Below, piece by piece: positions 3,001-62,989 of a stretch of 64,000 bases of DNA; the first letter of the stretch is position 1; the number at the start of each line of letters is the position of its first letter. Location: positions 1 to 64,000 of the IMG/VR virus record IMGVR_UViG_3300035698_035366; one strand, given 5' to 3'. The notes under the pieces are model-generated. The model did no database searches, was not told the DNA's origin, and saw nothing but the letters and a program-made list of their open reading frames with translations. The translations under genes were made by a program, and so were the position numbers.

Positions 3001-3978
3001 TGTCCACCACGAAATTGTAAATTTACTACTATCAGTAGCAATATTTGAGCCAGCAGCTGGTTTTGTTAGTCTTCCAACACCATCGAATGTTATAGACACC
3101 GACGCTGGGGTACTAGGTGGTAAAACTGGTGGAATTACTAGAGTTGTTACATAAGCAATATCGCCGTCATCGCCCTGGGAATTTAATGGGGGATCCTCTT
3201 GAACGAATCTCGCACCAAATGCATTACCGGTTGAAGCCGAAAGCTTTCCACCAGTAATAACACTAGTACCAATTTTACTCTTACCAATTGTTTCATCAAC
3301 GATATGATTAGTTAATACGCCAGCATCAACAATCTTATCAGCTGTTATATTACTATTGGCTATCTTATCAGTAGTTACCGAACCATCTTCAAATTTTAGT
3401 GCTTCCGCAGCACCTGCCGCAATTCTATCTGTCGCTATTGAGTCATCTGTAATCTTATCAAACGTAATTGATCCCGGGACAAATTTTTCATTAGGAATAC
3501 TATTTGTTTTAATTTTAGCCGTAGTAATTGCTGGTGGTGTAGGAGGAACCGTGTCTGGACCTTCAATATCTGCATTTTCAATTTCCAATTGTGCTGTCAA
3601 ATTTCCAGAGCCATCAAATCGTAAAATAGCATCAGTTGAACTTGATATTAATCTATCAAACGGTAATGAAGCTAACTGGATTCTACTACCTTCAAGTTCA
3701 TTCTCAAAAATTGCAATACCAGAGCTATCAAATTTGATAAGATTAACGCCAACCGCACCTTGTGTTAAAGAATTGGCTAATGCCCCTAAACCATTAAAGG
3801 CACCATTTTCTACATTTGCCAAATCGGCGCGGGCAAGCTCGACGCCACCGGTTGTAATACCATCATGAATGCGCAATGCTGCGGGTACATCAGTAACAAC
3901 TGACATTTCACCAGGTTGACCAGTGAAAGCGTCATTCTCTGATTTTGATCCTCTTCTTAATTGAAACTGTTCAGACAT
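1..3978 (-). CDS. Long tail fibre / receptor-binding protein, partial (runs off the window at position 1; >=1326 aa)
   Basis: Absent from the ORF track because it has no stop in the window. Manual translation from ATG 3978 (GAAGGA RBS upstream): MSEQFQLRRGSKSENDAFTGQPGEMSVVTDVPAALRIHDGITTGG (Mtd-N/hyaluronidase-like fibre anchor), TxDKI-type repeats, LamG/SPRY-like beta segments (FTISWWTRL, WHHCLLQYD, WTVSCWFQL, WYHLVLVWD) and a PDLTWIKAR...FVSWNWKA...HFSIATFTGNG segment typical of aquatic-phage fibres. Confidence 0.85.
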   Translation of the reverse strand, partial: MSEQFQLRRGSKSENDAFTGQPGEMSVVTDVPAALRIHDGITTGGVELARADLANVENGAFNGLGALANSLTQGAVGVNLIKFDSSGIAIFENELEGSRIQLASLPFDRLISSSTDAILRFDGSGNLTAQLEIENADIEGPDTVPPTPPAITTAKIKTNSIPNEKFVPGSITFDKITDDSIATDRIAAGAAEALKFEDGSVTTDKIANSNITADKIVDAGVLTNHIVDETIGKSKIGTSVITGGKLSASTGNAFGARFVQEDPPLNSQGDDGDIAYVTTLVIPPVLPPSTPASVSITFDGVGRLTKPAAGSNIATDSSKFTISWWTRLDANVPVGAGKRQVISINDDNNISVLDWRFLNGNNTVNYFQTINNVVSANATWDVPLILGRWHHCLLQYDANASVSDSQRRETLRFYFDGVELVASLGPSSGAGSGIIGTSVPSWINNTQIIKETGHTLIDTLTGKTAEWYLIDGLIVPPSAFVTNGSGAPILYTGPFGNAGYHLDFKDTGDLGKDISGNGNDWQTVATVSPNPDGPPSPPPSDDLVSAWFDGDVDFLSRVVSTTQNQTSWTVSCWFQLNNLKPDHTIFSSSAGGTRLHVSFTGNKFLVQHTNGPAVADANNNIYRPLFRDSAWYHLVLVWDTNNSVESERVRVFINGNRIERESGTYPLGITASLTTAGQSFIIGNVVGIQDFNGYISQFAFLSGKSNSTDANEFGSFVPVGTGDNAAIWKAKTNTQIVALVNSTDTTSFILGENIGDGLDSSSHGNNFSPSSMTHALNGSVNSPSNLHMIFNPLQNFSWNFLDGNKICTGLANIIANYQALGNIYAHSGKFHIEIDILGTGAAANGYGVGIAPRVADTQGGASSGHTTQPFGQVMYDSGVGIIDASDGVMQITPSTPYTNGDRITMAVDFDNNVINFFKNGIGIAVITPKRPISEEDYTVIVGDRSSAAVDIRYRLRSEPSEFQDTPLTGFVPWNTRNVSTPQFQGADFFNAVTYTGNGVASVGSPVVAIDPNDLIPGATLSNGNLTANLTGLQEFGGIFSLSSVDAGNADGFYVEFTLDANSNPSVGLVGVGFVSTDHDSNSSLNNTSNTMLYNDQGQNIANGQVFNSAGATWAPGDTIAAFVKNNTVEFFKNGVSQFVGATIFGGVRFAILYSSPFSPTVIGTVNFGDTPFVNTPPVGAQNMPAVITGGQTISNVGFSPDLTWIKARNQSLDNMLTDTLRGENHTLRTNSLSAETIDTNALTAFVDNGFVVGDNTAVNSFNNKFVSWNWKADGTVQSNTEGTIETSVSVAAPGHFSIATFTGNGLAATIGHGLPGTPDAIIVKSR

Positions 3979-3990
3979 TGTTTATCCTTC

Positions 3991-5811
3991 TTAAATTTGT
4001 GCGCCGCGAACGTCGCCACCAATTGAACCCGTAATATTTGCTATACCAACGATTGCCTTACCTGCCCCGCCAGCACTTCCCGGTGAAGGACCAACGCCAT
4101 TAAGACCAGCTTGACCCAAATTACCACCGCGGCCACCGCCACCGGTTGGATCAGCCACCCCAATAGGTGATCCCTGACCACCCAGAAGCAGTGTTCCGTC
4201 TGTTGCACCAGTTCCACGTCCTAGTCCTGGAGATCGGCCTGCGCCACCACCACCACCTGGTGATGTGGTTCCGGATGAGCTGTCATTACCACCACCACCA
4301 CCACCACCACCGCCGCCGATGACTCCATTATTTATCAAGGTAATTGTTGCGCCAGTGGTGTCAGTAACTTGAAAAGCATTGCCACCAGTCTGACCGTTAC
4401 CACCACCAAAATTTAGCCCACCACCATTACCGCCGCCATCACCACCAGTACCAGCAATGGTTCCGTTATTCGTTACATTGATGGTTGATCCTTCAGGAAT
4501 ATTGTCGATTACGAAGGCTGCACCAGTTATAGCATTTGAGCCAACTACAACATTGTTATCGACGATGATAGTTGAATTAGTTTTTTGGATGCCATTCCAA
4601 CCTGCATTAATTAATGCAGTTCTTGCATCAAAGTTTTGGGTGTCGGTTGAAATAATAATATTAGCTTCGAAAGCTGTGGTGCTGGTATCAAAAATTGTCG
4701 CCGTAGCAGTATTAACACCGCCGGGAACAATTAACACCATTATCTCATCACCCTCACCAGTGCTGATATCATCAGTAATTGCAAAAGGAATAGACGCTTG
4801 TAAATTGGCACCTAATACAAAATTACCAGTTAATGGTATACTGATATCAGAGGATTGTATTCCTGTAATTGTGTACGGAACGGTTAATCCAGCAAAACCA
4901 CCAGATAATGCTAGAACATTAATTGCTCCAGTTTCACCTTCATTGTATGCTTCTTTGAGGAAGAAAACATTGAAGATTTGTGGTACTGGATCACCGAGAA
5001 CATAAAATATATCACCATCGTTACCAATACTATTACTTACTGGTGGGTCTTCTGATGTAAATCTTCTACCAAGGGAATTTCCAGCAGTTGCTGAATTGAA
5101 ATTTCCCGCAAATACGGCACCGTTTTGAATTTTTGCACCTGTGACATTCCCATCTTTTATTTTATCTGAAGAAATTGCAGAATCTTGGATTTTTTCATTG
5201 GTGATTTGACTAGCTGCGACCGTAGCGGATAACACCGCACCATCGTCAATTTTTTCCGACGTGATAGCATTATTTTTCAATTTATCAGTTGTTATTGAAT
5301 CAGTAGCCAAGGAATCTGTTAAAATAGTCCATTTTACAATTTTGTCACCAGTTACTGCATCATCAGCAATTTTATCTAACGTTACCGATTCATTTGCAAA
5401 ATCAAATTCTGCTGATAATTGGGCCTTAAAAACAAAATTCCCATTTGAATCAGTTGTTGCAAATCTATTCGGATCACCGCTAATGTCAGCGACTAATCGA
5501 TCTGTTGACAATGTACTGTCAAGAATAAAACTACCATCAAGAGTTGGTTGAAATTCTGGTTCACCGCTTGAGTTGAACACGATAAACGTATCGGGATCAC
5601 CAGGGCCGAGAAGATCGATGGTAAAGGACCCCTCTGCAAGATTTGTTAAGTCTGCACGTAATAACGGAATGCCACCGAAAGGAGCACCAATGTGGCCGTC
5701 ATGAAGGCGCAATACATCGTTTGTTGTGTCAATGGAGAGTTCTCCCGCAACACCGTTAAATGTTAAATGGTCCGTTTCCGTACCGCGCCTGAACTGGTAT
5801 TGTTTAGCCAT
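3991..5811 (-). CDS. Tail fibre / adhesin with Mtd-N-like anchor and glycine-rich C-terminus (606 aa)
   Basis: N-terminus QYQFRRGTETDHLTFNGVAGELSIDTTNDVLRLHDG; DKIADDAVTGDKI-type repeats; C-terminal GGGGGGGGG...GGAGKAIVG motifs like T-even gp38 adhesins. Confidence 0.8.
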   Translation of the reverse strand: MAKQYQFRRGTETDHLTFNGVAGELSIDTTNDVLRLHDGHIGAPFGGIPLLRADLTNLAEGSFTIDLLGPGDPDTFIVFNSSGEPEFQPTLDGSFILDSTLSTDRLVADISGDPNRFATTDSNGNFVFKAQLSAEFDFANESVTLDKIADDAVTGDKIVKWTILTDSLATDSITTDKLKNNAITSEKIDDGAVLSATVAASQITNEKIQDSAISSDKIKDGNVTGAKIQNGAVFAGNFNSATAGNSLGRRFTSEDPPVSNSIGNDGDIFYVLGDPVPQIFNVFFLKEAYNEGETGAINVLALSGGFAGLTVPYTITGIQSSDISIPLTGNFVLGANLQASIPFAITDDISTGEGDEIMVLIVPGGVNTATATIFDTSTTAFEANIIISTDTQNFDARTALINAGWNGIQKTNSTIIVDNNVVVGSNAITGAAFVIDNIPEGSTINVTNNGTIAGTGGDGGGNGGGLNFGGGNGQTGGNAFQVTDTTGATITLINNGVIGGGGGGGGGGNDSSSGTTSPGGGGGAGRSPGLGRGTGATDGTLLLGGQGSPIGVADPTGGGGRGGNLGQAGLNGVGPSPGSAGGAGKAIVGIANITGSIGGDVRGAQI

Positions 5812-5915
5812 AGTTTTTCCCTTTTATGGTTTGTTACCTATATTTAGTACAGAAGCAAGTTCCATTTACCGAATTTAATTAATTGTGCTAAATAATTATA
5901 TCCTGCTATTACGCA

Positions 5916-6768: not shown

Positions 6769-7893
6769 ATGGCTAAGTCGCATATGGATACCACACTAAC
6801 GCTTCGCCCAAGTAATGCTCGGCAGGCGCTTCTACACGGTGCTAAGACAAAGAGCCCTCTTTTCGTTTGGGGCCCTCCTGGAATTGGTAAGTCACAGATC
6901 TTGAAGCAGATTGCCGAAGAGCTCGGTATGAACTTTGTTGATATTCGGCTGTCCCAGATGGATCCGACGGATCTTCGCGGTATCCCATATCCCGGTAAGG
7001 ACGAAGACGGTAATAACGTTATGTACTGGTCTCCTCCGCATTTTTACGAACGTGACCCCAGCAAGCCAACGATGTACTTGTTCGATGAAATGAACGCGGC
7101 GCCGCAGTCCATTCAGGCCGCAGCCTACCAGATTATCCTGGATCGCCAGATTGGTGATTACAAGATTGGACCCGACGATGTCGTGTTTGCTGCTGGTAAC
7201 CGTGATACGGATAAGGGCTCCACATTCAAGATGCCCACGCCTCTTATGAACCGCTTTGTTCATATTGAGATGGAAAGCAACTTCGATGATTTCCAGGAAC
7301 ATGCGATCCTGTCGGGTTATCACAAGACGGTCGTTGGTTACCTTACCTGGCAGAAGCAGGATCTGTTTAACTTTGATCCAGCCAGTGCGTTCCGTGGCTT
7401 CCCAACACCGCGTTCTTGGGAGCGTGTCAGCAAGCTGATCAGCGATGACCCCGATCTTTCCGACATGGTTAAGCTGGCACTGATTGCTGGTGCTGTTGGT
7501 GAGGGGGTTGCTGCAAAGTTCATCGAATACCAGAAGATGAACGAGTCACTTCCGAACCCAAGCGACATTCTCCTGGGTAAGATCAAGACACTCGATCCCG
7601 CCCAGCGTAAGGAAACCAGTGTCATGTACGCCTTGACAATTGGTCTCTGCTACGAAATGCGCGATATTTTCACCGTTGGTAACGAAAAGGGTCGGTCCAG
7701 CCCAGAATGGGATCACTGGGTCGAAGTTACTGATAACTTCCTGGCTTTCATGATGGATAACATGCAGCCGGAAATTGCCATCCTCGGGATGCGGACTATC
7801 CTGAGCGTGTTCAAGTTGAAGCCCGATGCGAAGAAGCTGAAGAACTGGAAGCGGTTCAGCGAACAGCACGGTGAGCTAATTCTTGCTAACTAA
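6769..7893 (+). CDS. MoxR-like AAA+ ATPase (374 aa)
   Basis: Walker A GPPGIGKS, Walker B YLFDEMN, AAGNR sensor, LMNRF arginine finger, TPRSWE motif. Confidence 0.9.
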   Translation: MAKSHMDTTLTLRPSNARQALLHGAKTKSPLFVWGPPGIGKSQILKQIAEELGMNFVDIRLSQMDPTDLRGIPYPGKDEDGNNVMYWSPPHFYERDPSKPTMYLFDEMNAAPQSIQAAAYQIILDRQIGDYKIGPDDVVFAAGNRDTDKGSTFKMPTPLMNRFVHIEMESNFDDFQEHAILSGYHKTVVGYLTWQKQDLFNFDPASAFRGFPTPRSWERVSKLISDDPDLSDMVKLALIAGAVGEGVAAKFIEYQKMNESLPNPSDILLGKIKTLDPAQRKETSVMYALTIGLCYEMRDIFTVGNEKGRSSPEWDHWVEVTDNFLAFMMDNMQPEIAILGMRTILSVFKLKPDAKKLKNWKRFSEQHGELILAN

Positions 7894-7906
7894 TCGTTCC
7901 TAGGCC

Positions 7907-7935
7907 GGGGGAGGGGAAACTCTCCCCCTAATTTC
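7907..7935 (+). terminator. Probable intrinsic terminator hairpin
   Basis: GGGGGAGGG-GAAA-CTCTCCCCC (9-bp stem, GAAA loop) followed by only TAATTT, just after the AAA+ stop. Confidence 0.6.
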
Positions 7936-7957
7936 CCAGGAATGAGGATCGATATCC

Positions 7958-7986
7958 TTGACAACGAAGTCAAACAGTGCTACAAT
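7958..7986 (+). promoter_or_regulatory. Sigma70-type early promoter
   Basis: TTGACA-17 nt-TACAAT with TGC extended -10; boxes identical to the 6684 promoter. Confidence 0.8.
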
Positions 7987-8014
7987 ACTGAACACTTAAA
8001 AGAGGAAAACAAAA

Positions 8015-9301
8015 ATGTCACTAGATTTGAATGATCCAGTTGTAAAAGAAATTGTTTCCGCGCGGGTTAACTTGCTGTTCCGCAAGCCCTTCTTTGGAAA
8101 CCTTATTGCGCGACTGGAAATTATTGATGCCAGTTCCTGGTGCAAGACGGCGGCAACTGATGGCCGGCGCTTCTATTACAATCGGGATTTTATCAAGAGC
8201 CTTACAAAGCCCCAACTAATTTTCCTCCTGGCGCACGAAATCCTTCACTGTGTGTACGATCATTTGGGTCGACGCGGTGGACGAGATCCTGCGCTTTGGA
8301 ACATGGCGAATGATTATATCAGCAACTGGACACTGAAGCAGGAAGGCGTTGGTGAGATGCCCCCACAGGGACTTATCTCGGACAAGTACACAGACGAGAT
8401 GACTTCAGAAGAAGTTTACCAATTGCTTTTGGATAACTCCGTTGAAATCGAGGCGACGCTGGATGAACATCTTGAACTGTCCGGTGAGGAAGGTGAGGGA
8501 GACGGTGATGGTGAAGGAGAGGGTGAAGGAGAGGGTGAAGACGGTGATGGCGATGGTAATGGCAAGAAGGTTAAGATGCGCATCACTGGTAAGGATGGCA
8601 AGCCCAAATTAACCGAAGATGACATCAGCTCAATCCGCAACGAGATGAAAGCCGCAGTTCTACAGGCGGCGCAGACGGTTGATGCGGGAAAGATTCCTGC
8701 TGGTATCCGACGCCTTATCAAGGAACTAACCGAATCAAAGATTGATTGGCGGTCATTGCTTGAAATCCATATCCAGAGCACTGTAAAGGACGATTACACG
8801 TTCCGGCGCATGGCGAAGAAGACCTGGGGTATGGGTGGTCGAGCAATTATTCCTGGACAGGATTGGGGCGAAGAAGCCGAAGTGTTTGTTTGGATTGATG
8901 CTTCCGGTAGTATTGACGAGCAGATGCTCCGAGACTTCTTGGGTGAGACCAAGGGAATTATGGAGACGTTCTCCACATTCAAACTCCATCTCGCAACGTT
9001 TGATACCGAAGCTTATAATTACCAGGTATTCACACATGACAACCTCGACGAAATTAATGAATATGATATCGGTGGCGGCGGCGGGACGGACTTCATGGCA
9101 ATGTGGCGCTTTATGAAGGACAATGATCTCGAACCGGAGAAGATGGTTTGCTTCACAGATGGTTACCCGTTCGGTGATTGGGGTTGGGAAGAATATTGTT
9201 CCGATGTACTGTGGGTTATCCACTACGATGACAATGTTGAACCCCCGTTTGGTACTAAGGTGCTATACAACACAGATGGCAACCGCGGATATCGTTCGTA
9301 A
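8015..9301 (+). CDS. Metallopeptidase-vWA protein (DUF2201-like partner of MoxR AAA+), 428 aa
   Basis: TAATDG, AHEILH (HExxH), acidic GE/GD linker, C-terminal vWA with DASGS MIDAS, GGGTDF and FTDGY. Confidence 0.85.
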   Translation: MSLDLNDPVVKEIVSARVNLLFRKPFFGNLIARLEIIDASSWCKTAATDGRRFYYNRDFIKSLTKPQLIFLLAHEILHCVYDHLGRRGGRDPALWNMANDYISNWTLKQEGVGEMPPQGLISDKYTDEMTSEEVYQLLLDNSVEIEATLDEHLELSGEEGEGDGDGEGEGEGEGEDGDGDGNGKKVKMRITGKDGKPKLTEDDISSIRNEMKAAVLQAAQTVDAGKIPAGIRRLIKELTESKIDWRSLLEIHIQSTVKDDYTFRRMAKKTWGMGGRAIIPGQDWGEEAEVFVWIDASGSIDEQMLRDFLGETKGIMETFSTFKLHLATFDTEAYNYQVFTHDNLDEINEYDIGGGGGTDFMAMWRFMKDNDLEPEKMVCFTDGYPFGDWGWEEYCSDVLWVIHYDDNVEPPFGTKVLYNTDGNRGYRS

Positions 9302-53495: not shown

Positions 53496-55748
53496 ATGTT
53501 AACGATCAAATCTATAACTATGAAAAATTTCCTGAGTGTAGGTAATGTTACGCAAGCAATCAATTTATCTGATAAAGGGTTGACACTTGTTCTAGGACAA
53601 AACATTGATCTTGGTACCGATGGTTCACGAAATGGTGTTGGTAAATCTACCATCATCCAAGCGTTATGTTATGGGTTATATGGTACTCCGTTAACAAATA
53701 TTAAAAAAGATAATTTAATCAACAAAACAAATGAAAAAAATATGTTTGTTACGGTTGAGTTTTCAAAGAATGACATTAACTATAAAATTGAACGCGGTCG
53801 GAAACCAAACACGATACGATTTCTAGTTAATGATAAACAATTCAATACCGATGAAGAAGGTGATGATGAAGCACATGGCGACATGCGGGTTACACAGTTG
53901 CATATCAATAGTATTCTTGGCCTATCACGAGAAATGTTTAAACATATTTTCGCTCTAAATACGGTTACTGAACCTTTCCTTGCGCTTGGTGCTCACCCAC
54001 AAAGACAAATTATCGAAGAACTACTTGGTGTTACCCAATTATCTGAAAAGGGTGAAAAACTAAAAGAACTGAATCGGACAACAAAGGAATCAATTACGTC
54101 TGAAGAATTTCGTATCAAATCTATGCAAGAAGCTAATAGCACTATTCAATCAAATATTAATAATTTAAAGACTAGAGCAAGTGGTTGGAAAGTAAAGCAT
54201 AAGAAGGATATTAATGATGTGATCAATGCGTTAGATCAATTGTCTCATGTTTCAATCGACGATGAAATTTCTATCCATAAAGCGTTAATTGTTGTCAAGG
54301 AATTAACAACAGAAAAAGATACCATTCAATCAAATATTAATAACCTGAAGAATAGATCAAATAGTTGGGGATTGAAACATGAGAAGGACATTAACGATGT
54401 GATTAATACATTAGATCAATTGTCTCATGTTTCAATCGATGATGAAATCTCTATTCATAAATCTTTAATTGTTGCTGAAGGATTAAGAACGGAAAAAGAT
54501 ACTATTGATATAAAATTGAAGACAGAGAATAAAAATAAAACGAGAATTGAAAAACAAATAAGTAGCTATAAAACACAGATTAGTGGTATAGACAGGCAAA
54601 TTGAAACAACCAACGAGCAATTGAAGAAAGCAGAAGAGCACGGTTGCCCAACTTGTGGTCAGGAATTGCATGACGAAAAACATGAGGAAATTGTAAATTC
54701 TATTAAAAATACTTTAGACGACCTTACACAGCAAATAACTGAATTAAACAATGATATTAATGAGTTAGAAACATCTTTGTTGGAAATAGTTAAAACAATC
54801 GACGGTATAAACGCCAATATCGAAGCAGTTGAAAAAAGTATAGAAGAAATGGGAGAAATTTCTACTCCATTCTATTCGGATATTGAGGAAGCATACAATC
54901 ATCGCGGCTCCTTTGAAAGTTTACAACGTGAGAAAGAGCGCATCGAGAGTGAAATTAATCCTTTCGATGAACAAATTGAACACTTTAATGTCAATTTCGA
55001 ATCGGTTGAAAAAAGTATAGAAGAAATGGGAGAAATATCAACTCCGTTCTATTCAGATATTGAGGAAGCCTATAATCACCGTAGCTCTTTAGAAGAATTA
55101 AAGCGTGAGAAAGACCGCATTGAGGGTGAAATTAACCCTTTCGATGAACAAATTGAACAACTTACGGAAAATGGTTTACAGGAAGTTTCATATGATCAAT
55201 TGAATTCGCTCACCACACAACGGGAACATCAAGAATTTCTTATCAAACTCCTCCTCAATAAGGACTCATTTATTCGAAAGAAAATCATTGAACAAAACCT
55301 TGCGTACCTTAATCATCGACTGAACAGTTACCTAGATAAACTCGGCTTGCCACATGAAGTTATTTTCCGCAATGATCTTTCTGTAGAAATTACTGAACTT
55401 GGTAGGGATTTTGATTTTGATAATTTAAGCCGCGGTGAAAGAAACCGTTTGATACTTGGACTTAGCTTTAGTTTTCGAGATGTTTGGGAAAGTTTGAACA
55501 TGAGCTGCAATCTAATGTTCATTGACGAACTAATTGATTCCGGAATGGATCCAGTCGGGGTTGAAAATTCTCTAAGTGTATTGAAAAGTATGGGAAGAGA
55601 TCAAGGCAAGGACGTATTCCTTATCAGTCACAAGGAAGAGCTATTATCAAGAGTAAGCCGAGTCATGTTGGTGAAGAAAGAAGGCGGGTTCACTAACTTC
55701 GTTGAGGACGTTGAGGATATTGAAGAAGTTGAAATAGATTTAGATTAA
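53496..55748 (+). CDS. Recombination ATPase subunit, gp46/SbcC/Rad50-like, 750 aa
   Basis: KNFLSVGN, Walker A GSRNGVGKST, zinc hook CPTC, signature LSRGE, Walker B FIDELID, FLISH. Confidence 0.93.
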   Translation: MLTIKSITMKNFLSVGNVTQAINLSDKGLTLVLGQNIDLGTDGSRNGVGKSTIIQALCYGLYGTPLTNIKKDNLINKTNEKNMFVTVEFSKNDINYKIERGRKPNTIRFLVNDKQFNTDEEGDDEAHGDMRVTQLHINSILGLSREMFKHIFALNTVTEPFLALGAHPQRQIIEELLGVTQLSEKGEKLKELNRTTKESITSEEFRIKSMQEANSTIQSNINNLKTRASGWKVKHKKDINDVINALDQLSHVSIDDEISIHKALIVVKELTTEKDTIQSNINNLKNRSNSWGLKHEKDINDVINTLDQLSHVSIDDEISIHKSLIVAEGLRTEKDTIDIKLKTENKNKTRIEKQISSYKTQISGIDRQIETTNEQLKKAEEHGCPTCGQELHDEKHEEIVNSIKNTLDDLTQQITELNNDINELETSLLEIVKTIDGINANIEAVEKSIEEMGEISTPFYSDIEEAYNHRGSFESLQREKERIESEINPFDEQIEHFNVNFESVEKSIEEMGEISTPFYSDIEEAYNHRSSLEELKREKDRIEGEINPFDEQIEQLTENGLQEVSYDQLNSLTTQREHQEFLIKLLLNKDSFIRKKIIEQNLAYLNHRLNSYLDKLGLPHEVIFRNDLSVEITELGRDFDFDNLSRGERNRLILGLSFSFRDVWESLNMSCNLMFIDELIDSGMDPVGVENSLSVLKSMGRDQGKDVFLISHKEELLSRVSRVMLVKKEGGFTNFVEDVEDIEEVEIDLD
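54141..54500 (+). repeat. In-frame tandem duplication, 2 x 180 bp (60 aa), in the gp46 N-terminal coil
   Basis: Units start ACTATTCAATCAAATATTAATAA (54141) and ACCATTCAATCAAATATTAATAA (54321). Confidence 0.92.
54816..55160 (+). repeat. In-frame tandem duplication, 2 x 177 bp (59 aa), in the gp46 C-terminal coil
   Basis: GTTGAAAAAAGTATAGAAGAAATGGGAGAAAT at 54828 and 55005. Confidence 0.92.
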
Positions 55749-56123: not shown

Positions 56124-56738
56124 ATGGAATACAATTTTACAAAGTTTAGCAGCAAGCCATTAATATCTTCACGTCATAGTTCCGACGATAAAGAAGAATT
56201 TATCAATTTATTTGAATTTGTTAAAAGTAATAAAATTATGACTAAACCAAACCCTGGGTGGGATAATTTTAGTATTGAAATCCTTCAAGGACTTTTAAAT
56301 ATAAAAAATTATTCAATTATCAATATTACTAATGCAAGCCCGTACGAAATAAACAGGATATGCTCAACAATAAACAGCACTAAGTGGGGCCGGGATATAC
56401 CGTTCAAATCTCGCATCACTGGGACTATCGATGATTGTAACGATGAAGTGTGGGCTTACCAAGAAACTGGTAATTTCTTTTTCGTCGAAGAAAATGTTGA
56501 ACCAATATTATTAAATTTTATTAATGATATTATTGATCAATTTGAACCTAAAAATTACACAGTTTTTGTTGATGATGTTTCAGTTGTCAATGAAGCTTAT
56601 TATAATTATTTAGAGATAGTAAACGATATTAATATATTCAATCAACGATACACAAAATTTATAAATACATCTGAAATTGTACATATTTATCACTTTTCTT
56701 CTAAAGACGATGCATTGGAATTTAAGCTTAGTATATAG
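56124..56738 (+). CDS. Hypothetical protein, 204 aa (FSSKDDALEFKL motif)
   Basis: ORF downstream of a sigma70-type promoter. Confidence 0.65.
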   Translation: MEYNFTKFSSKPLISSRHSSDDKEEFINLFEFVKSNKIMTKPNPGWDNFSIEILQGLLNIKNYSIINITNASPYEINRICSTINSTKWGRDIPFKSRITGTIDDCNDEVWAYQETGNFFFVEENVEPILLNFINDIIDQFEPKNYTVFVDDVSVVNEAYYNYLEIVNDINIFNQRYTKFINTSEIVHIYHFSSKDDALEFKLSI

Positions 56739-57297
56739 ATTGATATAAAGGAACGTTCCTAGAAATAGCCCATTGGCTTGCTTCTAGATAAGAATCAGAC
56801 CACATCAAATCGTCGTTTGTCTCAATAAACCATTTAGAATTAGGTTTATAATCTAGTATTTTTGTAGAAAATTCCTTTCCGCCTGGGACTTCATATTTAA
56901 TAATCTTATTAATTTTTTCATTAAACATGAAACCAAATGTGTAAACATCAGTGATATCTGTAAAATAAATTTTCGCAATTTTATCAACAGATTTACGAAC
57001 ATCACCAACAAATTTAGTCTTACCAACACAGAGATTATTAATATTATTCATAAAATCATCTACATAAAATATATTATCTCTTGATCCGCTTCGCCATCCA
57101 CCCCCAGCATTAATGATATATTTTGCTTTTTTCAAAGCTGACTTAGTTGTAATTTTCAAAGGTCGCCCGTATACAAGCATATAATAATTGTATTTTTTAC
57201 TTTGTAACAGTATTTGGGTTCCCAAATTCAAATGGATACAATATTGATATGTACCAAATGGTAAACATTTCCTACCGGTTTTTGACATTTTGAACAT
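56728..57297 (-). CDS. Hypothetical protein, 189 aa
   Basis: Preceded by TTGACA-17-TAACAT on the minus strand (57349-57321). Confidence 0.6.
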   Translation of the reverse strand: MFKMSKTGRKCLPFGTYQYCIHLNLGTQILLQSKKYNYYMLVYGRPLKITTKSALKKAKYIINAGGGWRSGSRDNIFYVDDFMNNINNLCVGKTKFVGDVRKSVDKIAKIYFTDITDVYTFGFMFNEKINKIIKYEVPGGKEFSTKILDYKPNSKWFIETNDDLMWSDSYLEASQWAISRNVPLYQSIY

Positions 57298-57320: not shown

Positions 57321-57393
57321 ATGTTACAGTAAACTATAGTAATTGTCAACTAATTATTTATATATTGACCTTATATTAACTATACTGTATTGT
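57321..57393. promoter_or_regulatory. Divergent sigma70-type promoters
   Basis: Minus TTGACA-17-TAACAT (57349-57321); plus TTGACC-17-TATTGT (57365-57393). Confidence 0.5.
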
Positions 57394-57429
57394 AAAGATA
57401 ATAAAAAATCCATAAAGGAGAACAAAAAT

Positions 57430-58317
57430 ATGGCGCAAGCTAATTGGCAAAAGTCAATGAGTAATACTATGATTACTGAACGGACCGGAGACCGTCAACG
57501 GTTCCAACCACAAACAATTGACATAACGTTAGAAGAACGAGATTATACAAGGCTTCGACAGTATATCCAAGCCGAGACAGGTTTTTATAACGCTATTAAT
57601 AACATATTCGCTCCCAAATTGCGAGGGTTCCCGCATGAATTGGTTGAGCTTGACGAAAGATTTGAAAAATTGTTTATCGATCTTTCTTATACTGGTTTCA
57701 ATTTGCGAGATGTCATTTACAGAAACAAAGAAACTGCTGAACTACCAGATGAACTAGAAAAACATAGAGATTTTATTTACGGAAAAAATAGTACCGGAAA
57801 TAGATTAGTTACTGAATCATTTGTTATTATGACTGAAGAATTTGGAAAAGGTCATTTTGTTCATCCGTTGGTTAAAAAAAGAATGGCAACGGAAATGTTT
57901 AGGTTTTACGTTAAACAAGCTAAAAATATTATGCAAACTGTTCGAAACCGAGAAGGTGAACTCGAACTCCGTGACACTGGTGAACTACTTGAACCAATGG
58001 ATACCATTAGAAAACGACATCTACAAATACCTAGAGAAATCGTAGATATTAAATGGGACAAAGATAAAGAAGAAACAATAATCACCAACCCATTTTGTTC
58101 ACCTATTAAATTTAGACATAATAATATACTAGCTGATAAGGGATGGAATCTTATGATTCTGCACCAAGAGCCTGGAAAAATGGCTTTAGGATTTACTCCA
58201 TGGGTGATAGATATTCGACATTCAAAGGCATTATACTTACTCAAATATGTTGATGTACGTTCTCCTAACGGAGGAGGAGCATTTTTTACTGCAAAATCCG
58301 GTGCAGGAAAGCATTAA
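57430..58317 (+). CDS. Hypothetical protein, 295 aa; tentative TnpB/Cas12f WED-REC-like protein without RuvC
   Basis: AAGGAG RBS before ATG 57430, so the CDS itself is secure. The TnpB resemblance is by-eye only (see findings); confidence refers to that call. Confidence 0.4.
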   Translation: MAQANWQKSMSNTMITERTGDRQRFQPQTIDITLEERDYTRLRQYIQAETGFYNAINNIFAPKLRGFPHELVELDERFEKLFIDLSYTGFNLRDVIYRNKETAELPDELEKHRDFIYGKNSTGNRLVTESFVIMTEEFGKGHFVHPLVKKRMATEMFRFYVKQAKNIMQTVRNREGELELRDTGELLEPMDTIRKRHLQIPREIVDIKWDKDKEETIITNPFCSPIKFRHNNILADKGWNLMILHQEPGKMALGFTPWVIDIRHSKALYLLKYVDVRSPNGGGAFFTAKSGAGKH

Positions 58318-58362
58318 AAATCAATTGTTTAATAAGCTAGAAAATTAATTACTATATACTTA

Positions 58363-58430
58363 TAGGCATATCATTTAGGCACACTAATCAACTACCGATC
58401 AACTACTAATCATAGGCACATTTTAGGCAC
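58363..58430 (+). repeat. Cluster of short direct repeats: 4 x TAGGCA and 2 x ATCAACTAC
   Basis: TAGGCA at 58363, 58376, 58413, 58424; ATCAACTAC at 58387 and 58398. Confidence 0.75.
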
Positions 58431-58451
58431 CAGCCATAATATCAAGTCGTG

Positions 58452-58483
58452 AAAAAAGCGACCCGAAAGTCGCTTTCTATTTT
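58452..58483. terminator. Bidirectional intrinsic terminator
   Basis: AAAGCGAC-CCGAAA-GTCGCTTT stem with a U-rich tract on both strands (TTTCTATTTT plus; TTTTTT minus). Confidence 0.7.
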
Positions 58484-58539
58484 GATTGTGTGTAATTTTT
58501 ACACCAATCAAAAAACCACAACGTTATATGACACTTCGC

Positions 58540-59070
58540 AGCGTCACAAGTATTTAGCATACTTGTTATTTGCAGACTCGGAAATAAGAGACCTGAGAAG
58601 TGACTACGTCGCTAGAGCATAGTGACTGATCCCCCTCATTGCGGTTGTGGGCAGTGATAGGGCCAGGAAAGTCATCGAAACCCTGGGAAGGATAGAAGAT
58701 AGGAACGCTGCCTGTCGCTATTGTTCGAGAATCTAAGCCTGTGCTAAGGTCAACTGCTGACTATGTGCCGCTTAGTACAAATCCAGAGTCCAGACTAAAA
58801 ATCTGGAACGTTTCCCTCTATTGGTCGCTGATATGAGCTGATAGAATGGCCGAAGCTGTAGGTTAAATCAAACCTCAGACCGTCGTGTTGGATAGAGTAA
58901 AATTCGGGAGGCTGCATCGTAGTTCGAAAGAAGTAAGGTTGTAATGGCACACCTGGTGACCGTAAGATGCACATGTCAGAAGAATATTCTATTTTTTATC
59001 TATTTTTTTCTCCACCTTTTGGGGGCGGGGGAGGAAGAGTCTGAAAAGAATTAGGATAAGAAAAGAATTA
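58540..59070 (+). ncRNA. Candidate large structured non-coding RNA, family not recognised
   Basis: No ORF in the track; GC-richer than flanks; at least 7 helices found by eye, several with G-U pairs that favour the plus strand; GAAA-capped stem; purine-rich linkers. Confidence 0.5.
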
Positions 59071-59310
59071 AAACACTTCGTGTTTACCAATGGGGATGAT
59101 TAAAGGAAGCAAGCCGTGCTTGCTTCTAATTTAGCAGTAATATCATTCGCGTAGCTCATGCAATTACTGCTAAATTGGTTTACTTATTAATTAATTCGTT
59201 TAATTATATGATAATTTGTAACTATATAAAATGATTATAGTATTCTTTAATGAAACGTTAGTGCAATGCTAAGAATACTATAATCCGTTTGAAGCGAAGC
59301 TTCTAACGTA
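59071..59310. other. Cluster of perfect inverted repeats / DNA hairpins (possible origin or ssDNA signal)
   Basis: Stems of 6, 9, 14, 15 and 5 bp; GCGAAGC at 59294, GCGTAGC at 59149, C-GAA-G triloop on the minus strand at 59071-59085. Confidence 0.6.
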
Positions 59311-59372
59311 ATAGTTATATAAAAAATCATAAAAAAGCGTTTCACTATGTTGGAGGAGGTTCTGAGTAGAAT

Positions 59373-59567
59373 TTATATTAACGGCATACTAGAATTTTTA
59401 GTATTTTCAATATTTTCTTCAATTATGTGGTGTATGATCTTTCTTTCCTTATAACTTAATCTCCAACCATCCTCTCTAGATATGGAGCCACGCATGTACC
59501 AACAGATATGATAGATCGTATCCATCAACTGCATTTCTTCATTCTCCATTTGCTTTAATAAGTCCAA
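59373..59567 (-). CDS. Tail/baseplate assembly chaperone C-terminal ORF (gp51-like or GT-type frameshift extension)
   Basis: ICWYMRGSISREDGWRLSYKERKII motif; TTG start only; frame is open back to the slippery site at 59609-59603. Confidence 0.7.
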   Translation of the reverse strand: MDLLKQMENEEMQLMDTIYHICWYMRGSISREDGWRLSYKERKIIHHIIEENIENTKNSSMPLI

Positions 59568-59599: not shown

Positions 59600-60574
59600 T
59601 TATAAAAAATTTGCAGGATTAAACTCTAATGGTATATCCCATTTATGTCCACATTTTCTACATACAACTTCATGCTCTGTTGGTACAGTTTTAATTCCTG
59701 TAACACTATCAACTTTATCCTGTATTACCTTTTGATCCCTAGCTGGTAATGATACCATAAACTCATTGATAAAATCTCGATTTGTTATTTCTTGACCATC
59801 TGGCATAATAATGTGAGTAATTGATTTAGCAGCCAAATTAAGTTTAACATCATTAAGTCTGTCAATTGTATCACCGAACGCTTTAATTGAACTGATATCT
59901 TCACCCTTATCTTCTAACAATTTGAAATGTTCGATTTTCTTTGATTCTTGGAATGCGATTTGTTGAGCAATAAAGATATTTTCTAGATCATATTGTTTAA
60001 CAAATACGTTTAAGTCTTTCATTTGTACAGAATATGGTGGATCCAATGGTTCAATTCCTGACATTAAATTGCGTATATCAATTTGGTATGAATTTTCTGC
60101 TTCACAGTCTGGACATTTTGTTTGAATTTCGTAATCATCTCCGTAAGTAACTGCACGAATCGCCATCATAATTATATCAATATCAGCTTGAACTAAACTT
60201 CGTGTATGAATAATACAAGGAACGCAACTCTTAATTGCATTTTCTGTTGCTCGTCCACTCATAATAGCATCAGGGTTCTTAAATAATAATTCATCCGCGG
60301 CAGTCATTGGAAAAATTTCAACTTCACCTGAAATCGTTAAATCGATATCACTATCGGCATACCATACAAGTTGACTTGGTAATTTAATAGTCATTCCTGG
60401 CGCTCTAAAATAGCTACTTAAAGGATTACCTGGCTTTGTTGGTGTTGCTTTTGTTTCTGGGGCTCTTGTGGATGGATTATTAATGTTTTGAGTCTTGGGT
60501 TCTTCCCAATCGTCATCTAATTGTTTTATATTACCCATATGTGGCATTTGTGTTGGATCAAATTCGTTGCTCAT
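59600..60574 (-). CDS. Baseplate hub / tail assembly chaperone (gp26-like), 324 aa
   Basis: NPLSSYFRAP, IKLPS, PMTAADELLFKNPDA, DIDIIMMAIRAVTYG, CPDC and CRKC Zn-binding pairs, EFNPANF end. Confidence 0.8.
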   Translation of the reverse strand: MSNEFDPTQMPHMGNIKQLDDDWEEPKTQNINNPSTRAPETKATPTKPGNPLSSYFRAPGMTIKLPSQLVWYADSDIDLTISGEVEIFPMTAADELLFKNPDAIMSGRATENAIKSCVPCIIHTRSLVQADIDIIMMAIRAVTYGDDYEIQTKCPDCEAENSYQIDIRNLMSGIEPLDPPYSVQMKDLNVFVKQYDLENIFIAQQIAFQESKKIEHFKLLEDKGEDISSIKAFGDTIDRLNDVKLNLAAKSITHIIMPDGQEITNRDFINEFMVSLPARDQKVIQDKVDSVTGIKTVPTEHEVVCRKCGHKWDIPLEFNPANFL

Positions 60575-60685: not shown

Positions 60686-62989
60686 ATGTCTGATATAGAC
60701 TCTCTAATCGACGCGATATATGGTATGACAAATGCGGTTTCAAAAAATACAACCGGTCAAGGCTCTGTATCTTTGAAAGATAATCCCGAAAAAGCTGCTG
60801 GGATACTGAGTTCTTCAATGGGTATCGCTACGAAATCACTAATTGAATTTAATAGTGAAACATCATCTGTGACAACAGAGGTTAATAGATTTAGTAGCAA
60901 TATTAGTAAGATACCATTAATTGGTGTTGCTGTATCAGCACTTGGTGTTGGAACCGCCATGGGAATATTAGCAGGTGCTACTCAAAAGTTATATGATAGT
61001 TGGGTCGACTTATATAAAGTAGGTGCAGTTGATGGAATGACTGGGCTAACTGAGTTGGGTAAAATCGCAAGTGATTCATATCAATCACTTGAGGAATTTA
61101 CAAATTCAGCGCGTGAATCAGCTAAAGTTGTTGCTGAATTGGGTTTGAAAGGTTTTTCAGAATTACAAACAGATGTTCGTCTGGCTGCACGAGAATTTGG
61201 TAGTTTTGGTATGCAAATCAGTGAACAGAATGAAGCATTGGGTGAATTTTTGGAAGTACAAAGAACGTTGGGTACCATTGAGAATATAAACAGGGGCCAA
61301 GCAATTTCAGATTTTATTAATTTGAGCTCGGCAACTTCGGCTTTGGCACATGCAACTGGTCGGTCACGTGATCAAATTGCGAAACAAACCGCTGAAAATA
61401 TGAAAAATAACACCTCGTTATATGGCTTTTTAAATACACTACCGAGTGGAATTAAACAATCTGTCACCGCTTCAGCTCAAGGAGCCATGAGTGTGTTTGC
61501 ATCATTGGGTGAACAGACCGGTGGGGATTTAAATAAAATATTGAGTGGTACCCTGGCAACGGGATCAGCGGGATTGGCTAATGGTATGGCTGAAATACAA
61601 GCCTTTATACCGGGTGTTGTGCGAGGTTTTGATGGATTACAAGGAGCGATCCGAAGCGGTGATCTTGAAGCTGCCCAAGAAGGTGCTATTGGTGTTGTTG
61701 AAGAAATAAAGAAAATGGGACCAGCGCAAGCGCAACAACTTGCAATGCTTGCAGAGCGCGGAAACCAAGCTGCTCAACAAATTTTAGCAATGTCGCAAAG
61801 TGCTGAAACTTTCAATTCTGATCAATTGCGTCGTAGTATACGTGATAAAGAACAGTTTACATCAACAAACCAATTCTTTGGTAACTTTAATCAAAACATG
61901 AAAGTGATTACGAGTCAACTAAGGAGAGTGTTTTTTGCTGTTTTAGAACCAATAATGGCATCATTTGGTAGTTCAGATACTGATGCATTTTCTGATTTTA
62001 CTGATTCAGTACGTATATTTGTTGATGATAACATTATCCCTATGTCAGAACGTCTTGGTGAATGGTTGGCAGATGACGGTATACCAAAAGCTATGGGTAA
62101 AATTGCAGATTGGTATGATGGTTTATTTGAAGGGGTGGCTGGAACAGACCCAGGGAAAAAATTTACTAATTGGATAGATGGTATTTTTGCATCAGCTGAT
62201 GGTAAAGCTGCTACTGGAATTTTGAATGGCCTTGGAAATATGTTTGAAAACATAGGTATTAAGCTTAAAGAAATTTTCTTTGGATCAACAAAGGAAATTG
62301 AAGGTGTGATGAAAACATTACCTGGAGTTTTTGGTGATCCTGGAGATTGGGAAGCTATAAAGAAATATGTTAGTGGTTTTATTGAAGGTATAAAAAATAC
62401 TTTTGCTTCTTTTGGTGAGTTGACAAAAGAAGACGTTGCAAAAAAAATATCCGAAGTGATTAATAGTGTAATTACAGCTTTTGCGGCTTTTCCAGAATTT
62501 ATTGATAATTTTATTGCTTCTTTTATCGGTAGCAAGTTTTTCTCTGATGAAACTGTTGAAGATGCTGAAAAAAGAATTAAAGATAGAGCAATAGCAAAAT
62601 TGGAAGCCGAAACAACTGATATTCTTAATAATCCCAAAACCGATCCGAAGAGTAAATATAATCTAGAAATGAAGGAACAGGAAAGAGTTAAAACGGATGT
62701 ATCAAACAGAGATTCTGGTGGATGGTTTTCCTTACCTACAAAACCAGAAGAACAACGTGGCCCAACGATACAAGATAGTCTTCAAAAAATGATTGCAGCA
62801 AGACAAGATGGTGGTTTGGATAGCAATGAATTAAAAGAAATTAAAGCTGCCATCGCAAAGCTTGGCGTTCCTTTAGAAAAAGCAAATGATGCAATGCAAT
62901 ATTTGGCAAGTGTTAAACCTGGTGAGTTGAATGCTGCGACCGCCGCGGTTGAATTAAATGGAAGAATACTTAGAGTTGCTAGAGAATAA
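60686..62989 (+). CDS. Tape-measure-like protein, 767 aa
   Basis: Helical, A/G/S/Q-rich composition; next to tail chaperone and portal genes. Confidence 0.65.
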   Translation: MSDIDSLIDAIYGMTNAVSKNTTGQGSVSLKDNPEKAAGILSSSMGIATKSLIEFNSETSSVTTEVNRFSSNISKIPLIGVAVSALGVGTAMGILAGATQKLYDSWVDLYKVGAVDGMTGLTELGKIASDSYQSLEEFTNSARESAKVVAELGLKGFSELQTDVRLAAREFGSFGMQISEQNEALGEFLEVQRTLGTIENINRGQAISDFINLSSATSALAHATGRSRDQIAKQTAENMKNNTSLYGFLNTLPSGIKQSVTASAQGAMSVFASLGEQTGGDLNKILSGTLATGSAGLANGMAEIQAFIPGVVRGFDGLQGAIRSGDLEAAQEGAIGVVEEIKKMGPAQAQQLAMLAERGNQAAQQILAMSQSAETFNSDQLRRSIRDKEQFTSTNQFFGNFNQNMKVITSQLRRVFFAVLEPIMASFGSSDTDAFSDFTDSVRIFVDDNIIPMSERLGEWLADDGIPKAMGKIADWYDGLFEGVAGTDPGKKFTNWIDGIFASADGKAATGILNGLGNMFENIGIKLKEIFFGSTKEIEGVMKTLPGVFGDPGDWEAIKKYVSGFIEGIKNTFASFGELTKEDVAKKISEVINSVITAFAAFPEFIDNFIASFIGSKFFSDETVEDAEKRIKDRAIAKLEAETTDILNNPKTDPKSKYNLEMKEQERVKTDVSNRDSGGWFSLPTKPEEQRGPTIQDSLQKMIAARQDGGLDSNELKEIKAAIAKLGVPLEKANDAMQYLASVKPGELNAATAAVELNGRILRVARE

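Follow-up and report, generated by a model that had tools for sequence, protein, structure and literature searches.

Can the recognition lobe of a TnpB-type protein exist as a free-standing protein, with a structured RNA beside its gene and no nuclease domain? The question is raised by a locus in the 64,000-nt stretch of DNA analysed here (the window; positions 1 to 64,000 of IMG/VR record IMGVR_UViG_3300035698_035366), in which a gene for a 295-aa protein lies upstream of about 1 kb of DNA free of open reading frames. The initial annotation, made from the letters alone, had mapped parts of the protein by eye onto the WED and REC segments of TnpB, had seen neither RuvC motifs nor a zinc finger, and had suggested a domesticated ribonucleoprotein made of the recognition lobe only.

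Layout of the locus

The ORF-free stretch at 58318-59372 (1055 nt without an ORF of at least 60 aa) is the longest in the window. Apparent gaps at 1-3981 belong to a single 1327-aa minus-strand frame that runs off the start of the window, so 58318-59372 is the sole true ORF-free stretch of about 1 kb, just as had been annotated. The upstream gene is present as a single copy in the window (Table 1). An alternative TTG start at 57343 would lengthen its product to 324 aa; homologues begin at the ATG. The sigma70-type promoter assigned to the gene is a weak candidate: the proposed site (57365-57393) matches the consensus at only 9/12, both promoter-like pairs upstream of the gene (TTTATA-18-TATACT and TTGACC-17-TATTGT) score the same 9/12, and promoter-like sites are no more numerous in the region than in shuffled sequence (19 versus 13.4 +/- 4.1).

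The carriers of the gene are uncultured jumbo phages that form a clade with kinship to T4, Rak2 and Atu_ph07, and the gene occupies a constant syntenic position between gp46-like and gp26-like genes. No TnpA, serine recombinase or IS ends were found around it in any locus inspected, which extends to the other loci what had been noticed in the window. In other loci a PDDEXK_15 nuclease holds the position of the divergent upstream ORF (56728-57297, minus strand); the ORF of the window shows no relationship to that nuclease (hhalign probability 0.2%).

Table 1. Features of the 295-aa gene, the spacer and the downstream RNA, in window coordinates.
Feature	Position	Strand	Details
Weak sigma70-like promoter matches	57357-57393	+	Upstream of the 57430-58317 gene
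Shine-Dalgarno AAGGAG	57415-57420	+	9 nt ahead of ATG; read directly from sequence
ORF	57430-58317	+	295 aa counted from ATG; predicted TnpB/Cas12 recognition-lobe-like protein
Four direct TAGGCA(C/T) heptamers	58363-58430	+	Starts 58363, 58376, 58413, 58424
Terminator-like hairpin and T-run	58455-58485	+	Hairpin 58455-58476; 8-bp stem, 4 GC pairs, tail CTATTTTGAT
Candidate RNA promoter TTTACA, spacer, TTATAT	58498-58530	+	By eye, type A locus alignments
Large structured non-coding RNA, type A, ~600 nt	58535-59126	+	Ends approximate
5' hairpin, conserved loop motif UAUUUA	58546-58566	+	Alignments
5' and central domain	58622-58820	+	C-run helix, GGAAAGU, CUAAG/CUUAG helix, CCAGAGU, covarying hairpin; compensatory changes in helices
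3' domain	58821-58985	+	Closing helix 58828-58835 / 58972-58979; GAAA-tetraloop hairpin; invariant UAAUGGC
Long hairpin, U/C-rich strand against A/G-rich strand	58987-59067	+	G-run GGGGGCGGGGGAGG at tip
Small hairpin with UUCG loop	59074-59082	+	CUUCG motif recurs in other RNA types (by eye)
Single-stranded tail, then GC-rich hairpin	59083-59126	+	Tail 23 nt, 59083-59105; hairpin 59106-59126; sequence and fold

Predicted fold of the 295-aa protein

The AlphaFold (AF2) model of the 295-aa protein, computed from an alignment of 112 sequences, reached a pLDDT of 91.5 and a pTM of 0.86 and places a strand at residues 28-32, helices at 36-168 and six strands at 197-263. A second AlphaFold model, of a family member of ~25% identity and from a disjoint alignment (pLDDT 92.9), has the same topology of one strand, a helical bundle and a six-strand sheet. 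The segments that had been aligned to TnpB by eye fit the predicted secondary structure, with the strand and long helix at ~28-66, the last REC helix at ~146-168 and the beta sheet at ~197-263.

Foldseek comparison of the first model with the PDB returned structures of the Cas12/TnpB type in 14 of the 16 top places; the matches included Cas12f (8hr5, 7wju), Cas12p, Cas12n, Cas12k, TranC, Cas12X2, Cas12o1 and TnpB (8h1j, 8iaz, 8exa). Probability was 0.98-1.00 for the top four, and the Cas12/TnpB matches among the first 16 ranged down to 0.14. With the second model, ISDra2 TnpB stood at the top and 17 of the 18 best matches were Cas12 or TnpB. The scores behind these lists are modest (E 1e-3 to 1e-2, TM 0.3-0.4). 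In a structure search of BFVD the first two ranks went to members of the family and the third to an unnamed entry; most of the ranks that followed were giant-virus 'transposase' or Cas12f-like TNB proteins. In a recognition lobe the REC helices are inserted behind the first strand of the WED beta-barrel and part it from the other strands; this arrangement is predicted in the 295-aa protein, at a TM of only 0.3-0.4, and the idea of a WED/REC-type fold came through this comparison unrefuted.

No RuvC domain or zinc finger was found in the protein by AlphaFold model or Pfam, and it holds no Cys/His clusters, in agreement with the annotation; the chain stops ~30 aa past the last strand of the sheet, in a C-terminal tail that is short and basic. 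Our best reading, drawn from predicted structure and from similarity scores that are modest, is that the protein may be related to the recognition lobe of TnpB, Cas12 and Fanzor and lack the nuclease. By eye, a conserved Y-x-D after the sheet (D275) was picked out as a lead; it could be a vestige of RuvC motif I.

Protein family

The protein, which had been called an orphan, turned out to have homologues in 162 clusters at E<=1e-3 (107 at E<=1e-10), every one of them metagenomic and unnamed. Profile similarity may point to the same kinship as the models, at a modest level (HMM E ~2e-3). The best solved-structure match was Fanzor1 9cf0 for each of the profiles A3, A4 and A7 (E 0.0021-0.0076), two of which (A4 and A7) were built from disjoint sequences, and it covered the same segment each time, namely the first strand and first helix, ~90-110 residues only.

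Neither the protein nor its relatives matched a family in Pfam, PHROGs, PADLOC or NCBIfam, and the Pfam models, those of TnpB/OrfB included, matched none of the 112 family members. Searches of the ESM Atlas gave sub-threshold look-alikes only, tblastn of four members against 50,697 phage records gave no match, and neither did blastn of the locus. In the literature we found no account of a RuvC-less TnpB-like phage family or of the structured RNA described below.

A large structured RNA downstream of the gene

The initial annotation had placed a large structured RNA directly beside the gene. Such an RNA does lie downstream, but it does not abut the gene: ~210 nt separate the stop codon from the RNA start, and this spacer holds the heptamer repeats and the terminator-like hairpin. 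The RNA of the window, termed type A, is conserved by nhmmer in the window and in L001, L002, L024, L008, L029, L030, L031 and L035. It is encoded on the plus strand, as judged by G-U pairs and by a fold z of -1.6 on the plus strand against +1.0 on the minus strand.

Conservation of base pairing was assessed in the 3' domain. Across its 32 pairs, 94.5% of cells were paired, compared with 35-41% in slid controls; both sides had changed in a compensatory manner at 19 pairs, compared with 2-5; and the covariation score was 0.62, compared with 0.05-0.13. For three measures, the observed value was reached by 0 of 500 shuffles. These data show that the non-coding DNA encodes a structured, functional RNA whose base pairs are kept through compensatory changes beyond controls. 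We also considered the ORF-free DNA as a decayed remnant of RuvC-coding sequence and rejected this, as its compensatory changes are of the RNA type and it has no coding frame.

Further 3', a G-run hairpin is present in every RNA type at a matching relative position, on the plus strand and 530-1130 nt past the stop codon. The GC-rich hairpin at 59106-59126, which a terminator scan did not call, is likely to be the 3' end of the RNA.

Rfam 15, whose families include HEARO, GOLLD, ROOL, OLE, group I/II introns, RNase P, tmRNA and 6S, gave no gathering-level match in the window or in six other loci and only chance-level matches at E<=10; ARAGORN found neither a tRNA nor a tmRNA. RNase P, tmRNA (permuted forms included), group I and group II introns and HEARO had each been candidates by eye, and neither ARAGORN nor the two modes of Rfam search gave support to any of them. 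We propose that the RNA belongs to a new class. R1, a covariance model built on the central core of type A, did not detect types B-F. By eye, types A and B seem to share CCAGAGU and GCGCUGAUA, a similarity that R1 did not confirm.

Repeats in the spacer

The direct repeats of the spacer are ~12-13 nt apart and local to it, as three of the four TAGGCAC copies in the 64 kb fall here, within 55 nt. Similar plus-strand arrays follow the gene in L001, L019, L020, L022, L023 and L025, and copies of the form TAGGCTC follow it in the RNA-less loci L016 and L017. Type B loci and the L008/L029 group lack the arrays or have other motifs in their place. In L002 and L024 one copy sits, by eye, at about -35 of the putative RNA promoter. 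The terminator-like hairpin that follows the repeats is conserved in L001.

Linkage of gene and RNA across loci

Linkage was assessed in the 24 distinct loci with enough flanking sequence. In 18 of them the gene is followed at once by a covarying RNA in the same orientation, and the linkage test that the annotation had named for related jumbo phages did not refute its idea. It spans proteins down to 21% identity, and the neighbours further downstream vary (gp26-like in the window, SPRY in L025, RNase H in the L008 group, and others). An RNase HI-like ORF stands straight after the RNA in the L007-L011, L008, L029, L035 group and is not found in the window. When loci were sought by a DNA pattern of the RNA only, four new true RNA loci were recovered, with the gene immediately upstream in all four. 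Two of the eight viral pattern matches (L033, L034) were chance, and the one match of a scan of genome contigs, in a Methanosarcinaceae MAG and without nhmmer support, was taken as chance too.

The pairing is not invariable. The RNA is missing next to the gene in L010, L015, L016, L017, L039 and the P0162 contig; the protein tree divides these into three or more lineages, and their proteins keep every conserved residue. Conversely, in L031 and L035, which form one lineage, the RNA is well conserved and the KRH and HQ motifs of the protein are degenerate. Because the RNA can be missing beside intact proteins and kept beside decayed motifs, an obligate ribonucleoprotein is not established; the recognition-lobe ribonucleoprotein first suggested is supported in part, by the fold and the RNA linkage. 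The RNA bodies themselves are swapped like cassettes between close relatives, and the flanks stay conserved: in L008 and L009 the proteins share 66% identity and the flanks ~70%, with RNA bodies that are unrelated.

Search for a guide

The guide-like segment that had been anticipated was not found in the RNA. No exact 12-mer or >=17/20 match of the RNA occurs elsewhere in the 64 kb beyond chance, and no target was found. With the heptamer region the RNA has no >=17/20 match and no 10-mer in common, whether identical or complementary. Its 3' segment of highest variability is partly base-paired.

Discussion

The reading that we favour, while giving it somewhat less than an even chance, is that a nuclease-free TnpB-like recognition module and a partner RNA are bound together and target nucleic acid without cutting it. 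The RNA would be transcribed independently, downstream of the TAGGCAC-type direct repeats. The 295-aa protein would bind this ~600-nt RNA through its WED/REC surfaces, much as TnpB does with the omega-RNA that is encoded at the 3' side of the tnpB gene, and the particle would then bind a nucleic-acid target and leave it uncut, in regulation, in targeting or as a decoy. The analysis shows the predicted fold, the lack of RuvC, the strand and structure of the RNA and the repeated occurrence of gene and RNA side by side; the binding of RNA by protein, a guide role for any part of the RNA and the identity of the target are what we infer here. A bolder form of the proposal, which we regard as rather unlikely, is that a stand-alone TnpB-type lobe is joined by an ornate RNA, which makes up for the half that the particle lacks and comes in exchangeable cassettes. 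Jumbo phages would then have an RNA-dependent system of a new class, derived from TnpB by radical exaptation or else surviving as kin of a pre-nuclease ancestor of TnpB/Cas12.

Protein and RNA could instead be independent neighbours, the RNA being a free-standing ornate RNA or ribozyme, like GOLLD, ROOL and OLE, in a permissive slot between recombination-nuclease and baseplate genes. Since every locus belongs to a single phage clade in which gene order is conserved, the adjacency could be a matter of inheritance and not of function. Such independence would account for the loss of the RNA at least three times beside an intact protein, for its conservation where the protein motifs decay and for the replacement of RNA bodies between conserved flanks; the RNA also has its own promoter-like element behind a terminator-like hairpin, and its size and richness in helices are typical of ornate RNAs. 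However, wherever the RNA is present it immediately follows the gene in the same orientation, despite differing downstream genes, and the RNA-only search recovered the gene in four of four true matches. To our knowledge, moreover, all members of the TnpB/Fanzor/Cas12 fold family that have been characterised act together with an RNA from an adjacent gene. We consider independence unlikely, if a serious contender. The heptamers raise another explanation, which we hold to be improbable: the protein may be a sequence-specific DNA-binding factor that has kept the TAM-reading WED/REC surface, binds the TAGGCAC-type repeats 3' of its own gene and regulates the RNA or the neighbours with no RNA guide. 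The repeats are specific to the locus, recur on the plus strand after the gene in several divergent loci, persist as TAGGCTC in the RNA-less loci L016 and L017 and, by eye, have one copy at about -35 of the putative RNA promoter in two loci. That type B loci and the L008/L029 group lack them or have other motifs instead speaks against such a role, and we know of no precedent for a TnpB-like lobe that binds DNA without RNA.

The locus might also be a replication origin, with the heptamers as iterons, a structured transcript with a G-run that forms a persistent R-loop and primes DNA synthesis, and the WED/REC protein holding the RNA-DNA hybrid. R-loop priming has precedents in ColE1 RNA II, the mitochondrial CSBII G-run and T4 ori(uvsY), which lies next to baseplate genes, and REC lobes of the TnpB/Cas12 fold family cradle RNA-DNA hybrids. 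The ~12-13 nt spacing of the direct repeats, the invariance of the G-run hairpin across RNA types, the RNase HI-like ORF after the RNA in one group and the gp26-like baseplate genes that adjoin the locus, as at T4 ori(uvsY), all fit with this. Yet the RNase H neighbour is limited to that sub-lineage and absent from the window, cumulative GC skew has no turning point at 58-59 kb, the extensive covarying structure of tertiary type exceeds what a primer needs, and an essential origin would hardly be expected to lose its RNA in several lineages, all of which makes an origin very improbable. Like ColE1 RNA II and T4 ori(uvsY), the locus has a structured or promoter-driven transcript with a G-rich element and with repeats close by, to which some loci add an RNase H gene; it differs from them in that this gene is lineage-specific and the RNA structure is conserved beyond a primer's requirements.

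To return to the favoured reading of a recognition module with a partner RNA, the locus resembles TnpB, Fanzor and Cas12f in the predicted order of WED strand, REC helical insertion and WED sheet and in a structured RNA 3' of the gene on the same strand, but the 295-aa protein has no RuvC domain, zinc-finger/TNB domain or Pfam OrfB match. The RNA is three to four times longer than an omega-RNA and starts ~210 nt past the stop codon behind a hairpin, and the search for a guide in it was negative. Unlike IS200/IS605 or IS607 elements, the locus has no TnpA, serine recombinase or IS ends, and the gene is single-copy and syntenic. Among known immobilised derivatives, TldR, dCas12f-sigmaE, Cas12k and Cas12m are non-cleaving, have a 3' non-coding RNA and bind without cutting (PMC10691335; bioRxiv 10.1101/2023.11.30.569447; PMC13472631). 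They keep the RuvC fold with a mutated or truncated site, whereas the 295-aa protein misses the whole domain, and they have defined guides and targets, of which none was found for this RNA; the short guide of TldR matches a nearby promoter, whereas this RNA matches no local DNA.

A small protein with a large RNA that may replace a missing protein domain would, by analogy, recall IscB/IsrB and its large omega-RNA (HEARO). IscB is Cas9-like, and the HEARO RNA is located 5' of the IscB gene; the protein fold here is another, the RNA is 3' of the gene and Rfam HEARO does not match it. GOLLD, ROOL and OLE are many-helix RNAs of 500-800 nt, often associated with phages and of unknown biochemical function (bioRxiv 10.1101/2024.12.08.627333; PMC9723947). 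The present RNA differs from these in sequence and helix layout, in having no Rfam match and in being tied to a TnpB-like gene.

The RNA is of value alone, as a phage RNA of ~600 nt that covaries strongly, has no Rfam family and comes in alternative bodies at one locus. All characterised relatives of TnpB, Fanzor and Cas12 known to us, the nuclease-dead ones included, have retained the RuvC fold. If a widespread family consists of the WED/REC lobe only, this would show that the lobe is able to act as an independent module, and would bear on how RNA-guided nucleases were assembled or dismantled in evolution. A particle of the two, if it forms, would offer a protein scaffold of very small size for programmable, non-cutting binding of nucleic acid and a new player in the biology of jumbo phages.

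A phage protein family with a TnpB/Cas12-like recognition lobe

The 295-aa protein had been described as an orphan, which does not hold: an exhaustive HMMER search, clustered at 50% identity, recovered 162 homologue clusters with a cutoff of E<=1e-3 and 107 with E<=1e-10. Almost all are 250-310 aa long, and none has a name or Pfam domain. By tblastn, four family members gave zero matches in 50,697 phage records. The conserved positions comprise the motifs ELxYYN (E49, Y53, N54), KRHLQ (K195-Q199), HQ (245-246), TPW (256-258) and YLxKYxD (269-275), together with W239, and homologues share the window ORF's ATG as start. The sigma70-type promoter proposed for the gene is only a 9/12 consensus match of a kind that is not enriched in the region.

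In the AlphaFold2 model of the window protein (112-sequence alignment; pLDDT 91.5, pTM 0.86), residues 28-32 form one strand, 36-168 a bundle of helices and 197-263 six strands, followed by a short basic tail, and this predicted order of elements is the WED-REC-WED order of TnpB/Cas12. In Foldseek searches of the PDB (E 1.6e-3 upward), Cas12/TnpB proteins took 14 of the first 16 places (CnCas12f1, Cas12p, AsCas12f1, Cas12n, Cas12k, LaTranC, Cas12X2, Cas12o1 and three TnpB structures), with probabilities of 0.98-1.00 for the first four and down to 0.14 for the Cas12/TnpB matches within the first 16. A replicate model, built from 47 distant sequences disjoint from the 20 closest and representing a family member that shares ~25% identity with the window protein, had a pLDDT of 92.9; its best match was ISDra2 TnpB (8h1j), and 17 of its first 18 matches were Cas12 or TnpB. 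Against viral models, two family members and one unnamed entry came first, and giant-virus 'transposases' made up most of what followed, together with a Cas12f-like TNB protein, which is of the Fanzor type. Profiles built from all 112 sequences, the closest 20 and the distant 47 each ranked Parasitella Fanzor1 first among 177,635 PDB sequences (E 0.0021-0.0076), always over the first strand and first REC helix, the segment with the YYN motif.

The TnpB-type relationship suggested by the initial annotation stands at the level of fold in both models, but because individual scores are modest (TM 0.3-0.4) and Pfam TnpB models do not match the family, we regard it as remote and supported, not proven. 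As had been claimed, the protein contains nothing like RuvC or a zinc finger, and neither does the DNA downstream. Because the defining RuvC domain is missing, we do not class the family as TnpB and regard it instead as related to, or derived from, the superfamily's recognition lobe.

Genome setting

The window comes from a 296-kb IMG/VR contig (IMGVR_UViG_3300035698_035366), and contigs of 363-408 kb encode the same protein. Genes around the locus are T4-like, and the nearest cultured phages by the gp46-like protein (37-43% identity) are the jumbo myoviruses Sinorhizobium phage Phosso, Agrobacterium phage Atu_ph07, and Salmonella phage Munch and its Rak2-like kin. The coiled-coil arm of the gp46-like protein itself contains two internal tandem duplications, each made up of two almost identical segments of ~50-70 aa, on either side of the zinc hook.

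In many homologous loci (labelled L001, L002 and so on) a PDDEXK_15 (PF24608) nuclease is encoded upstream of the gene in divergent orientation. The window, L001, L002 and L024 have another family of ~190 aa in this slot, for which no relation to the nuclease could be detected (hhalign probability 0.2%), and L002 and L024 also have an Endonuclease VII gene there. Downstream of the RNA the neighbours vary (gp26-like, SPRY, RNase HI-like and others); in one sub-lineage the RNA is directly followed by an RNase HI-like ORF of 126 aa (Pfam RNase_H / RVT_3), which the window lacks.

Coordinates of features in the window and in homologous loci
Feature	Locus	Position	Strand	Remark
1327-aa open frame	window	1-3981	-	exits window start
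610-aa open stretch	window	3994-5823		next to the 1327-aa frame
gp46/SbcC-like ATPase	window	53496-55748	+
~190-aa family	window	56728-57297	-
295-aa ORF	window	57430-58317	+	ribosome-binding site AAGGAG
ORF-free stretch	window	58318-59372		1055 nt without ORF >=60 aa
TAGGCA(C/T) direct repeats	window	58363-58430		~12-13 nt spacing
Type A RNA	window	~58535-59126	+
RNA 3' domain	window	58821-58985
12-nt perfect inverted repeat	window	59130-59174		TTTAGCAGTAAT ... ATTACTGCTAAA; just past RNA's last hairpin
64-aa ORF	window	59373-59567	-	convergent
gp26-like baseplate hub	window	59600-60574	-
767-aa ORF	window	60686-62989
PDDEXK_15	L025	942-1520
PDDEXK_15	L037	2330-2854
PDDEXK_15	L039	2370-2900
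Thioredoxin gene	L016	1503-1844		after WED/REC gene
RNA body, type A	L008	5632-6954
RNA body, type B	L009	5659-7277
RNase HI-like ORF	L008	6954-7334		also in L011, L029, L035
RNase HI-like ORF	L009	7274-7657
RNase HI-like ORF	L007	7088-7483
Direct repeats	L038	3940-4060		ATAGTCATTAG; GCAGATAGCAGTTCATAGTT twice

A structured RNA downstream of the gene

The ORF-free stretch is, as initially annotated, the sole real gap of its size, because the apparent gaps near the window start are one open minus-strand frame. That frame is probably part of a very large structural (fibre-like) protein. Elsewhere in the window, GC content is ~0.50 at 7001-9000, compared with ~0.37 for the genome.

ORF-free DNA is conserved between homologous loci even at 34-40% protein identity. 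In an alignment of nine type A sequences (window, L001, L002, L024, L008, L029, L030, L031 and L035), the 32 predicted pairs of the 3' domain formed in 94.5% of cells, compared with 35-41% when partners were slid by 1-3 columns, and 19 pairs changed on both sides (2-5 in the slid controls); none of 500 shuffles attained the covariation seen. Further helices outside this domain also covary, and both G-U pairing and folding energy point to the + strand. Landmarks include a GGAAAGU element, an invariant UAAUGGC and several hairpins: a 5' one with UAUUUA, one with a GAAA tetraloop, a long one that is U-rich/purine-rich and has a G-run at its tip, and one with UUCG. Rfam 15 gave no gathering-level match in the window or six other loci (matches at E<=10 were at chance level), and ARAGORN found nothing. 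The inverted repeat past the RNA lies before the 64-aa ORF, of which L002 has a homologue by eye.

Loci were gathered both by protein similarity and, separately, by RNA pattern. We counted 24 distinct loci in which the sequence extends for ~700 nt or more past the gene, and in 18 of these the gene is followed directly, on its own strand, by a structured region free of ORFs. Scanning IMG/VR with the RNA pattern gave four new true RNA loci, all with the gene immediately upstream. By sequence, at least six RNA types can be distinguished (besides A: B, L007, L009, L011; C, L019, L020, L022; D, L025; E, L023; F, L037), which neither nhmmer nor a type A core covariance model could align with one another. 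Every type has a C/U-run:G-run hairpin on the + strand, 530-1130 nt past the stop codon, a motif nearly missing elsewhere in the loci.

Alternatives to an obligate protein-RNA partnership

The linkage is found in most loci, but several results argue against its being obligate. Six loci lack the RNA (L010, L015, L016, L017, L039 and the P0162 contig). These form at least three separate groups in a quick maximum-likelihood tree, and their proteins retain every conserved residue; conversely, the RNA of L031 and L035 is well conserved although KRH and HQ are degenerate. Both observations favour protein and RNA being independent neighbours, a reading that we consider rather doubtful. The RNA body has also been swapped as a cassette, because type B loci nest within a type A clade of the protein tree and the bodies of L008 and L009 are unrelated (1.3 kb without blastn similarity) between flanks ~70% identical, the proteins being 66% identical. 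A variable guide-like segment was not borne out: RNA segments matched the window or the heptamer region at chance level only, and the part most variable between close relatives, between the G-run and UUCG hairpins, pairs with the U-rich strand over at least some of its length. RNA-less L016 has a thioredoxin gene after the WED/REC gene, and the Cas12p-thioredoxin complex ranks among the best Foldseek matches; this is probably coincidence.

The heptamer repeats are a third element, between gene and RNA. Three of the window's four TAGGCAC copies lie within them, similar arrays occur in L001, L019, L020, L022, L023 and L025, and RNA-less L016 and L017 retain TAGGCTC copies after the gene. In L038 (type F), which of the RNA-bearing loci is the most distant, other direct repeats replace them at the same place and precede a GC-rich structured region ending in a GCUCCCC-GCAA-GGGGAGC hairpin. 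We think it unlikely that the protein is a DNA factor binding such repeats, and quite improbable that the locus is an origin with a primer RNA.

No earlier description of the RuvC-less family or of the RNA was found in the searchable literature. This is a new and widespread phage protein family with a TnpB/Cas12 recognition-lobe fold and no nuclease, the large structured RNA is likewise new, and the gene-repeat-RNA arrangement is recurrent, not universal. Our best mechanistic guess, held tentatively, is that the locus would produce a non-cleaving ribonucleoprotein, like TnpB with its omega-RNA.
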